A stretch of 64,000 nucleotides of DNA. Source: Pocillopora damicornis. Taxonomy: Eukaryota. Of this stretch, positions 10,701 through 13,700 are shown in pieces. Location: assembly GCF_003704095.1 (NCBI RefSeq), contig NW_020847378.1, forward strand, positions 62,001 to 126,000. Reading direction: 5' to 3'. How positions within the stretch are numbered: position 1 is the first letter of the stretch; each line of letters starts with the position of its first letter. The notes under the pieces are model-generated. The model did no database searches. It saw only the letters and a program-made list of their open reading frames with translations, and had not been told where the DNA came from. The translations under genes and the position numbers were made by a program.

Positions 10701-13700
10701 TATAAGCTGGATACAGTTTCTCCTACCATGAGCGCCACGATGGAGAAAACTAAAGTTGCAACCAGTGCAATAGAACCATAAGCCTCCCAATATCGTGGTT
10801 TTTCACCATCCGGAAGAGACTGCGAAGAAAAACGTAAGTAAGCCCGTCTTAGTTACTTAACAAAAAGGATCTAGGCCGTACTATCTTCAATTTTTTTTTT
10901 TGAAAATTAACGTTATAATAATAATAATTATAATAAAAAAATATAATAATTCCATCATCGTATTCCATAGAGGACGCAGAGCCACGGAACCCTTAGAGAA
11001 TTTAATTATTGGCACACACAGAGTTATTTGATCATAAGCGGTTCATTAATCCTGCTATCCATCCAATTTGCACTCGAGTCGTTGCAGTCAATCCATTTTT
11101 CCTGGCGTTGATGTCCACAAGCCAGATTTTACCATTCCACTGTTAATAATGGTTCAGTAGTAATAGTTAAATAGTGCTAATCTCATAACCCAACGGCATG
11201 TGAAACCTACCTTTGCCTTCGGTCGATCAAAAAGTAAAAGGCAACTACAAATAAAAAAATAGCAGGTAGACTTTAAAATTAAAGTACGTGCTGTAGTATA
11301 GAAATAACCGACATCTGACGATTGCATCATAAATCGCCATTTTTCTCTCCGTATCACCCCGAGGAAATATTTATTTCCACACTTAGATAGCCTGTATACG
11401 ATTATTTCAGGCTGGTTTAATCAAAACAGTTTTCATTTATCCTTTAAAGAGTAAAAAGTTATACCCAGTTGTGGCAGAAGTAAAAAAAGATCAAGAGAGG
11501 ACTTCGTGTCGGTATTACATCAAATGGCTACCAGGTGATGGCAATGGCCGACTCTTGCAAGGCCAATAATGCAGGCCTTATCCAAGAAACTATATGCAAT
11601 TGTTATTATTAAATTAATTAGTAGCTGTCCCAATATACGTTCTCAGTACTTACTGAGTGCAGTTGTCATATAGGGTTCTTTTTTCATCATCCTCAGGCAA
11701 CAGCAAAGGCAACATAATTGCAAAAGGCACTAACCTATAAGAAAACAAGCAGCCTTAATAATGCCACTGGCCAGATATATTTTGAACTTCAAAACAAATA
11801 GACATGCGCTGTTGCTTAATAGACTTTAGAGATTTCCTGTTTAAAATGTTGCCTATTGTCTTTTAATACTTTATCTCAACAAAGTAAATTATGTGAATGA
11901 AAGTGATCCTCGCAGTAATATGCACTACTTAGGCAGTAGTGAAAATAAGGCCTGAAAAAAAATTCAGGCCTGTACGGGATTTGAACCCATGACCTCTGCG
12001 ATACCGGTGCAGCGCTCTACCAACTGAGCTAACAAGCCAACTGGGAGTTATTTTCACTACTGCCTAAGTAGTGCATATTACTGCGAGGATCACTTTCATT
12101 CACGTCTTTATCCGCAGTTCAAATATATGACTTTCATATATTCCTAACCAAAGTAAATTATCGAGTTTGAATACTTAAATCTCAAGATATCAACAGCCTT
12201 GAAACACTTTGTTGATGGCATTGGAGGGTGGGGGCTATAAAGGAAGCCACAGAGAAGGAAAGTGAACAGCAAGCTTCTCAGCCGCAAGGAGCACACCATG
12301 GCAACAATACCACAGCCCACTTAAGGTCATAACCTGGCAACACATTACCCACAAACCTGAAGTGGACTGAGAGGGAGAGGGTGAAAAAAACAAAACAAAA
12401 CAAACAAATTGCAAGGTAAATTAGGAAAAAATAGGCAGTCTGAGATGATTGATTGAGGGAGAAGATTTCATTTCAAAAAAATTTTTTAATTTAGCAAGTG
12501 GTACAGCAAAATACACCAAAATAAACTTATTTCAATTCACAATGACATGATTTAAGACACTCACCAACATAATGCATATAATATCCTAGTGGGCCATAGG
12601 TAAGATGTTGTTGAAGAAACCTTGTCAGTAAAATACAACATAATTAGAGTGCACACACTGTAATGAGTAAAGATATTACCTATTAGCCAGTACATTTTCC
12701 TTTTCCTTTCTTTTCTTTGTGTTATCTTGCCAACCTGTCATTTATTTTCATTTAATGCTGATGCCATCTGGCTGCCTGGCTCCACTAGCCCCTATGGTCA
12801 TTCCAGGTACTCTAATTTCATTTCCAAAGTTTTTTTGTTTTGCAATAGCTTACAAGGTAGGAGAGAGTACAAATAAAGTTTGCTTTGTTGATGTGCCATA
12901 TACAAGGTTTGTACTGTCTGAAAATTCGAAGACCTTTTCTTACATGTAGGAATTATGGGCAAGTTAAAACCAATGTTGTGCTACAACAATCATGCAATGA
13001 ACCAAGGCACTTTCTCTTAGTTCAAACTTTAATTTTTTGTCAGTCACAAGTGATAGTTGAAACTACCATCAACTCTCATGACTGTTTGAACAGGGCTTTT
13101 AAGTAAGAATGTAAAAACCACTCATAGGGGTTTCAATCACTTTTTCCACATGCATTTGCAAAAATATTTGCAATGTTTATAGTTTTTTTGAGGTTCACAG
13201 TACTTACTGACAGTAACTGAAAATTGGTGATATTTTTAGCCTTTTCTCTGAGTCTGATGTATGCATTCAAACCATAGTTGACAGTCAAAAAGAATGATGC
13301 CAGGTGCGCCATCTAGGGAAGAAAAAATGGTGTTCATAATAAGAAGTTTCTTACTAATAAACCTTTATTTCACAGTCAAAACCAAAACTTGGAATTGATT
13401 TTGCATATCCCTGTGTTTGCAAACAATTTGGGCTAACCCAGGATTACAAGCCTAGATTGAAAAATCTTCATTGGGAAACTTAAAACAACTTTAAGTGTTT
13501 CTTCAGTCATAACAAAGCTGAATTCAGACATAATTTGTTCACCACATGATTTGCTCATAAGAAAATCCAAAGTTGATGACACCATTGGAATCCTGCAATT
13601 TGCATTTGCTGAAGCTTTAGACGCTGATTAACCTTTGGACCCCTAAGAGTGACTAACATCTAATTTCTCCTCACAATACCACCCCTGAATCGCACAGTCA

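Follow-up and report, generated by a model that had tools for sequence, protein, structure and literature searches.

A tRNA-bearing, non-coding retroelement of the coral Pocillopora damicornis, probably mobilised by Penelope-like enzymes

The genome of the coral Pocillopora damicornis harbors a family of small non-coding retroelements built around a tRNA-like cloverleaf, and the best explanation for this family, a probable one in our judgement, is that Penelope-like enzymes mobilise it in trans. It is described here starting from the copy found at positions 11880-12161 of a 64,000-nucleotide stretch of contig NW_020847378.1 (positions 62,001 to 126,000, forward strand), hereafter called the window. 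That this copy is a tRNA-carrying, non-autonomous element inserted by Penelope-type machinery, which combines a reverse transcriptase (RT) with a GIY-YIG endonuclease, had been proposed from the window alone, and the proposal holds at the level of the family, from insertion anatomy. Mobilisation by Penelope is put forward because this anatomy matches that of the resident Penelope family: two alternative 3′ ends, head-to-head composites, and AT-rich target-site duplications (TSDs). Why should such a small repeat matter? No class of eukaryotic retrotransposon is less well understood than the Penelope-like elements (PLEs), short interspersed nuclear elements (SINEs) are by definition tied to long interspersed nuclear elements (LINEs), and to our knowledge the known small hitch-hikers of Penelope all carry hammerhead ribozymes. 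With a tRNA-bearing family that obeys the insertion rules of Penelope, a third class of retroelement would be seen to recruit small-RNA genes. In a search of full-text literature no tRNA-bearing, Penelope-dependent element was found; Repbase and Dfam lay outside that search, and a prior description is possible.

The window copy is a compact composite of two arms. ARAGORN finds a single tRNA in the whole 64 kb, a minus-strand tRNA-Thr(GGT) at 11966-12038, and the Rfam tRNA model, whose gathering score is 29, gives it 59.7 bits. Repeat searches place it between the arms of a 56-nt inverted repeat with 100% complementarity (11893-11948 with 12048-12103), the whole being flanked by a direct repeat that is exact over 13 nt (11880-11892 and 12149-12161). 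Inspection of the sequence reveals neither poly(A) nor a simple repeat at either end of the element. The parts are as follows:

11880-11892, no strand: left copy of the 13-bp TSD, CAAAGTAAATTAT, an exact match to 12149-12161
11893-11948, minus: main-arm tail that covers unit positions 100-155 and stops at the short 3′ end of the family; left arm of the 56-nt inverted repeat
11949-11970, minus: T-run hairpin with an 8-bp stem, its T8 spanning loop and stem; overlaps the last acceptor-stem bases of the tRNA (from sequence)
11966-12038, minus: tRNA-like cloverleaf of the Thr type; the anticodon is GGT, and the A and B boxes are good (ARAGORN and Rfam; anatomy from sequence)
12039-12047, minus: 9-base leader 5′ of the tRNA; forms the 5′ end of the main arm and its junction with the inverted arm
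12048-12148, plus: second arm, inverted and 5′-truncated, unit positions 100-200, reaching the long 3′ end of the family
12104-12148, plus: 45-nt "tail" extension within the second arm
12149-12161, no strand: right copy of the 13-bp TSD; its first base, C, may alternatively be unit position 201

The original prediction had read these same features from the letters, and its minus-strand cloverleaf (predicted at 72 nt, here 73 nt long), perfect 56-nt inverted copy of the tail on the 5′ side, 13-bp AT-rich flanking repeat and lack of a poly(A) or simple-repeat tail are all present. It had also described an "extra 45 nt" on one side. The right arm is indeed longer than the left by that one-sided stretch, 12104-12148, but nothing has been added there: the stretch belongs to the longer of two normal 3′ ends of the family. 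The layout is not due to chance, because it recurs in other family copies. The left flank of this copy occurs just once in the assembly, which offers neither an empty-site paralogue nor a haplotig on which to verify the duplication.

Mapping of 30 loci gives a repeat unit of 249 nt, with a tandem period of 248-249 nt. The unit runs from the 9-nt leader through the 73-nt cloverleaf, the T-run hairpin and a tail of about 107 nt to a 43-nt linker that leads back to the leader; in tandem copies the leader continues without a break from the conserved linker, which there measures 49 nt. The unit has no open reading frame (ORF). A first look at the genome (234 Mb in 4393 contigs) returned 1817 candidates, and all 40 that were scored are copies. 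At no more than two mismatches there are 259 matches to unit positions 135-155 and 152 to the linker, so the young family amounts to a few hundred arms, about 260 at this threshold. Its history comprises several waves, since a second subfamily is marked among the linker matches by a frequent variant, A to G in ...TTTAGAACC, and older copies stand at 84-89% identity (loci L012, L100, L101 and L103). Sequencing runs that contain the sequence come from coral or coral-associated libraries of three organisms. Parts of the element occur in contigs of four coral RNA libraries, of which three had undergone poly(A) or oligo-dT selection, with DNA carry-over possible; some of these contigs extend into unique flanks and most of the signal lies over the tRNA part, while RNA ends, strand and level are unreadable from contigs. 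In coral genome annotation, copies are likely to have been mis-called tRNA genes, SINEs or miniature inverted-repeat transposable elements (MITEs).

The ends of the copies carry most of the argument. Among the 57 arms that were read, 24 have their 3′ end at unit positions 154-163 (the short end) and 23 at 201-211 (the long end), some 46-51 nt apart; the other 10 are rearranged or broken copies, or are cut by the edge of the locus. Their 5′ starts are spread over the whole unit, giving arms from 0.1 to 2.2 units long, and those of 1.0-2.2 units form partial tandems, that is, the pseudo-long-terminal-repeat (pLTR) structure. Coverage is maximal just upstream of unit position 155 and minimal in the linker, as 5′ truncation predicts. 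Taken together, the copies are the picture of 5′-truncated reverse transcripts of a multi-unit RNA in the tRNA sense.

About half of the sampled loci have a second arm fused head-to-head with the first, and 20 such junctions were seen. Every one of the 13 composites that could be classified pairs one short with one long end (binomial p = 1.2e-4), seven in the order short-long, six in the order long-short, and none as a like pair. Genome-wide, exact-pattern coordinates counted by eye give at least 21 close inverted pairs, all minus-then-plus with their 3′ ends outward, and no tail-to-tail (+,-) pair appears in these lists. The TSDs of 14 insertions measure 9-16 bp (mean 13.1), differ in sequence from copy to copy, and have a GC content of 25% against 38% for the window; they also flank single arms and direct partial tandems that have no inverted repeat (L014, L020). 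Fixed termini with a fixed short TSD, or a lack of TSDs in other copies, are what the original prediction had named as contrary to it, and neither is seen across the family.

How does this compare with the autonomous elements of the same genome? One of them lies 5 kb away in the window, and the prediction was right about all of its features, namely an inverted 3′ end, a 35-nt one-sided extension and a 12-bp TSD:

16808-16819, second copy 17887-17898, no strand: 12-bp TSD of the Penelope insertion
16820-17657, minus: 5′-truncated copy of the dominant Penelope-like element (C-terminal GIY-YIG region and 3′ untranslated region), ending at the short 3′ end
17658-17886, plus: inverted second arm of the insertion, ending at the long 3′ end, with its 35-nt tail at 17852-17886

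Its inverted repeat is 194 nt long and 98% identical (16820-17013 with 17658-17851), and its minus-strand ORF at 16967-17578 gives a weak GIY-YIG match; longer copies elsewhere have an RVT_1 domain upstream. The endonuclease fragment of this copy retrieves more than 1100 candidates from the genome, many of them 98-100% identical, and the main family to which it belongs is the only lineage here with evidence of recent activity. Its insertions have 3′ ends at q837-847 or q871-873, 35 nt apart. Single insertions use either end about equally (L031-L090), whereas 11 of 12 head-to-head composites combine a short with a long end and one combines two short ends. The TSDs measure 11-14 bp, with 22% GC. 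At one pLTR-ORF junction (L088:480-760, G000:C2266) the start codon lies exactly at the short site and the 35-nt tail codes for the next residues, which places the RT start sites of Penelope at the junction of pLTR and ORF. Fourteen endonuclease matches that seemed divergent at protein level proved to be decayed copies of the main family. At least four more RT lineages with GIY-YIG-family matches, one of these above the Pfam threshold, are represented by L091-L098; their RT is 35-49% identical to that of the main family, and they look like additional Penelope-like families of this genome. A strict rule of short-plus-long pairing in autonomous Penelope was not found stated in the PLE papers cited here, where the tail is "often at one end only"; such pairing may constrain models of priming on both strands.

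The tRNA module itself is well-formed, with good A and B boxes, but it departs from a functional tRNA in several respects. Position 33, near-universally U in tRNAs, is a C, the anticodon stem has one mismatch, and the anticodon is GGT, which eukaryotes do not normally use. The cloverleaf is tRNA-derived, and not a working tRNA. Six bases past its 3′ end, a run of T6-T8 is present in 28 of 28 copies scanned, and to judge from its sequence the T-run hairpin looks like an RNA polymerase III terminator. The polymerase should stop at this run, about 60 nt before the first start site of reverse transcription. This sets the element apart from classical SINEs, in which the head drives transcription of the whole unit; moreover, many arms have their 5′ start ahead of the tRNA, within the linker or the preceding unit. 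The earlier suggestion that the tRNA acts as a promoter is hard to square with the conserved T-run, and the tRNA is unlikely to serve the whole unit as a polymerase III promoter.

What then could the cloverleaf be for? Among copies, the non-CpG mismatch rate is 1.6% in the tRNA module and 4.4-6.6% elsewhere in the unit, and this roughly threefold better conservation points to constraint in the source copies. The module probably matters for propagation. Six arms start at unit positions 6-11, where 1.4 would be expected and where the 5′ end of the tRNA falls (unit 10), and four begin exactly at the 3′ foot of the hairpin (unit 99-100); both are small numbers, gathered post hoc. The former cluster fits templates that begin at the tRNA, whether through RNase P or through a start close by, while the latter fits stalling of the reverse transcriptase at the hairpin. 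A further hint comes from the lizard element PAc, whose RNA requires about 170 nt downstream of the start sites (PMC11167929). In a tandem RNA of the coral element, linker and cloverleaf fill about 140 nt downstream of the long start site and so, by analogy, would lie where PAc RNA needs its protein-binding region.

These observations can be assembled into a mechanism, whose first steps are shown by the copies themselves. Their template is an RNA in the tRNA sense, with a length that ranges from a single unit to over two. Reverse transcription begins within it at one of two places about 50 nt apart, unit positions 154-160 or 201-208, and halts at variable points toward the 5′ end, and the products enter AT-rich target sites where the staggered break spans about 13 bp. 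In about half of the sampled loci both sides of the break have received an arm, joined head-to-head, always one from the short start and one from the long. If the analogy with PAc is valid, source copies would be limited to tandem or partial-tandem copies that retain sequence downstream of the start sites, a stretch which in the tandem unit consists of the linker and the tRNA-like fold. The role we would favor for the tRNA module is one in cis, either as a protein handle or by letting RNase P set the 5′ end of the RNA. That the cloverleaf is a working cis element just downstream of the RT start sites, perhaps with an RNase P-set 5′ end much as hammerheads provide in retrozymes, is put forward tentatively, as a possibility that we consider less than even.

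Several results weigh against mobilisation by Penelope. The unit shows no similarity to the main Penelope family, either over its last 873 nt or in the 5′ ORF region, when compared by BLAST at word sizes of 7-11 with 56 loci (30 loci, the 14 "diverged" endonuclease matches and 12 RT-region loci). Nor does it resemble the 3′ regions of the 8 sampled loci of other RT lineages, 4 of them with GIY-YIG-family matches, in what was a partial sampling of lineages. Smith-Waterman alignment of the junction regions of unit and Penelope does no better than shuffled sequences, 79 of 500 of which reach its score; the best local alignment is a 13-nt AT-rich match near the long ends, within the shuffle range. 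A search of a 2.15-unit copy with Rfam at E up to 5 detected no hammerhead, returning two tRNA matches and noise. The spacing of the two 3′ ends exceeds both the 35 nt of the local Penelope and the 30-40 nt of the literature. Finally, the sampled loci from which the 57 arms were read are mostly best BLAST matches, and not a random draw.

Two expectations of the original prediction find no support in these results. An autonomous Penelope whose 3′ end matches the tail was found neither in the main lineage nor in the 4-5 further GIY-YIG lineages sampled. As for a tRNA standing in for the hammerhead, there is no local counterpart, in that the pLTR/ORF junction of this genome's own Penelope (L088:200-900) also yielded no hammerhead with Rfam at E up to 5. 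As for the absent sequence link, what remain are a partner that escaped sampling, recognition by structure or by very short motifs, or a tail that has diverged beyond recognition. A "CAYGTCT"-like motif seemed common to the short sites and was rejected, as the TSD-resolved ends sit 3-4 nt apart relative to it. Separately, a stretch beside one Penelope copy (L033:304-363) weakly resembles the hairpin together with the 3′ half of the tRNA-like module (E 0.006-0.24) and may represent another tRNA-derived repeat family.

Could more familiar machineries have produced these copies? An ordinary tRNA-derived SINE copied by a LINE such as RTE, CR1, L2 or similar, its inverted arms arising by twin priming, would account for the tRNA-like head, in which both the A and the B box are intact, for 5′ truncation and for variable TSDs of LINE-like length, and would leave no puzzle in the absence of a Penelope with matching tail from the sampled loci. 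Yet such a SINE should have a poly(A) or microsatellite tail, which is missing here, and should not have two discrete 3′ ends. Twin priming leaves a variable, internal outer end, whereas the outer ends of these composites are the fixed 3′ termini, one of each kind; the T6-T8 run would also halt polymerase III ahead of the tail. Whether the tail might be a LINE 3′ untranslated region, a possibility that the prediction had named as contrary to it, was only sampled: four of four randomly fetched sites holding the tail pattern alone turned out to be old copies of the tRNA-bearing family, and none was a LINE end. We consider the LINE explanation very unlikely. Seen on its own, the window copy resembles a DNA transposon of the MITE or foldback type, with a tRNA gene as cargo between 56-nt perfect terminal inverted repeats and a duplication on either side. 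The rest of the family makes this extremely improbable, given that single arms and direct partial tandems, with duplications yet no inverted repeat, make up many of the copies, that arm lengths and the inner junction differ between copies, that outer ends are never symmetrical, and that TSD length varies from 9 to 16 bp.

Two further alternatives concern the role of the tRNA and the form of the template. A tRNA gene and its terminator could have been captured once between pLTR-like sequences and carried along by Penelope as mere cargo, with no role in propagation. The native-looking T-run that accompanies the tRNA agrees with such a capture, and both the capture of unrelated sequence between pLTRs and mobilisation in trans are documented (PMC3846280). 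The conservation of the module relative to tail and linker, however, points to constraint, and the surplus of 5′ ends where the tRNA begins (6 arms within 6 nt, a small and post hoc count) are also not what cargo would give; we hold this account to be possible, if rather doubtful. In a retrozyme-like cycle, a circular RNA of unit length would be reverse transcribed by a rolling-circle mode, so that arms longer than one unit would not require tandem genomic sources. Arms of up to 2.2 units agree with this, and the unit size and tandem habit recall the retrozymes with hammerheads, 220-240 nt in size, that occur in the coral Acropora (PMC7229834). Against it, Rfam detected no self-cleaving motif, and the ends that RNase P or RNase Z would produce are unsuited to RtcB, the ligase implicated for retrozymes. 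RNase P and RNase Z products have a 5′-phosphate and a 3′-hydroxyl and are not RtcB substrates. A circular template is, in our estimate, improbable. Mobilisation by Penelope-like enzymes is the explanation favored here, as a probable one.

Farther along the window, beyond the Penelope insertion, lie three protein-coding features:

18736-20638, plus: two ORF fragments with Sir2-family matches at E 1e-26 and 6e-12, which probably represent exons of a gene resembling sirtuins
21813-22742, minus: ORF of 309 amino acids with a BTB/POZ domain
23360-25543, minus: single-ORF ARMC5-like armadillo-repeat protein of 727 amino acids (E 8e-58)

If the cis-element reading of the cloverleaf is true, the family would be the first class of "Penelope SINEs" and a natural minimal substrate, 249 nt in length, for Penelope retrotransposition. 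For experimenters, such a substrate would come with two precisely mapped start sites. The short-plus-long rule, seen in the passenger and in the autonomous element alike, constrains any model of how Penelope primes on both sides of a break.

Among known systems, the closest likeness is to the endonuclease-containing PLEs (Penelope/Poseidon, Neptune and Nematis). A one-sided tail of 30-40 bp together with an adjacent inverted, 5′-truncated copy are features of PLEs unseen in non-LTR (LINE) insertion (Craig et al., PMC8557442). In the lizard PAc, biochemistry has shown that two internal initiation sites bound the tail and that both DNA strands are cut and extended (PMC11167929); the same has been described for Pen2a of Adineta vaga, a species in which host genes have also been captured between pLTRs (PMC3846280). 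The coral element shares with these PLEs its partial tandems, the adjacent inverted and 5′-truncated copy, the optional tail at one end, two internal RT start sites, variable AT-rich TSDs and the lack of poly(A). It differs from them in having no ORF, a unit of just 249 nt, a tail of about 46-51 nt in place of 30-40, and a tRNA-like gene, as well as in its lack of sequence similarity to any Penelope lineage sampled. The non-autonomous Chlamys elements (such as MRC1 of Chlamydomonas, PMC8557442) offer a second parallel, being non-coding, Penelope-dependent, provided with pLTRs and arranged in head-to-tail multi-copies. Unlike the coral element, they share their 3′ ends with autonomous families and contain no tRNA module.

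The non-LTR retrozymes of animals, small tandem repeats with type I hammerheads that are thought to be non-autonomous partners of PLEs (PMC7229834; bioRxiv 10.64898/2026.07.22.740005), resemble the element in another way. Both are non-coding, about 250 nt long and capable of forming tandems, both contain a compact structured RNA module and are flanked by TSDs of more than 4 bp, both occur in corals, and Penelope enzymes are the presumed helper of each. In the coral element, however, the module is a tRNA-like cloverleaf and no self-cleaving motif was detected in the unit, and while retrozymes are related to pLTRs in sequence, the element is not visibly so.

Small-RNA modules have also been recruited by other retroelements. 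Like the tRNA-derived SINEs (SINE2), the coral element is short, non-autonomous and 5′-truncated, with TSDs and a tRNA-derived module containing A and B boxes. In contrast to them, it has a T6-T8 terminator right after the tRNA and no LINE-derived or A-rich tail; its tRNA lies inside a tandem unit and does not form a fixed 5′ head, and it has two alternative 3′ ends and head-to-head composites. Helenus, a group of non-autonomous LTR retrotransposons with tRNA-derived sequence in their LTRs (PMC10886601), likewise shows the recruitment of a small-RNA module outside the LINE/SINE pairs. Helenus uses the machinery of LTR retrotransposons and has LTRs and short fixed TSDs, whereas the insertions of the coral element have the anatomy of the target-primed, Penelope type.

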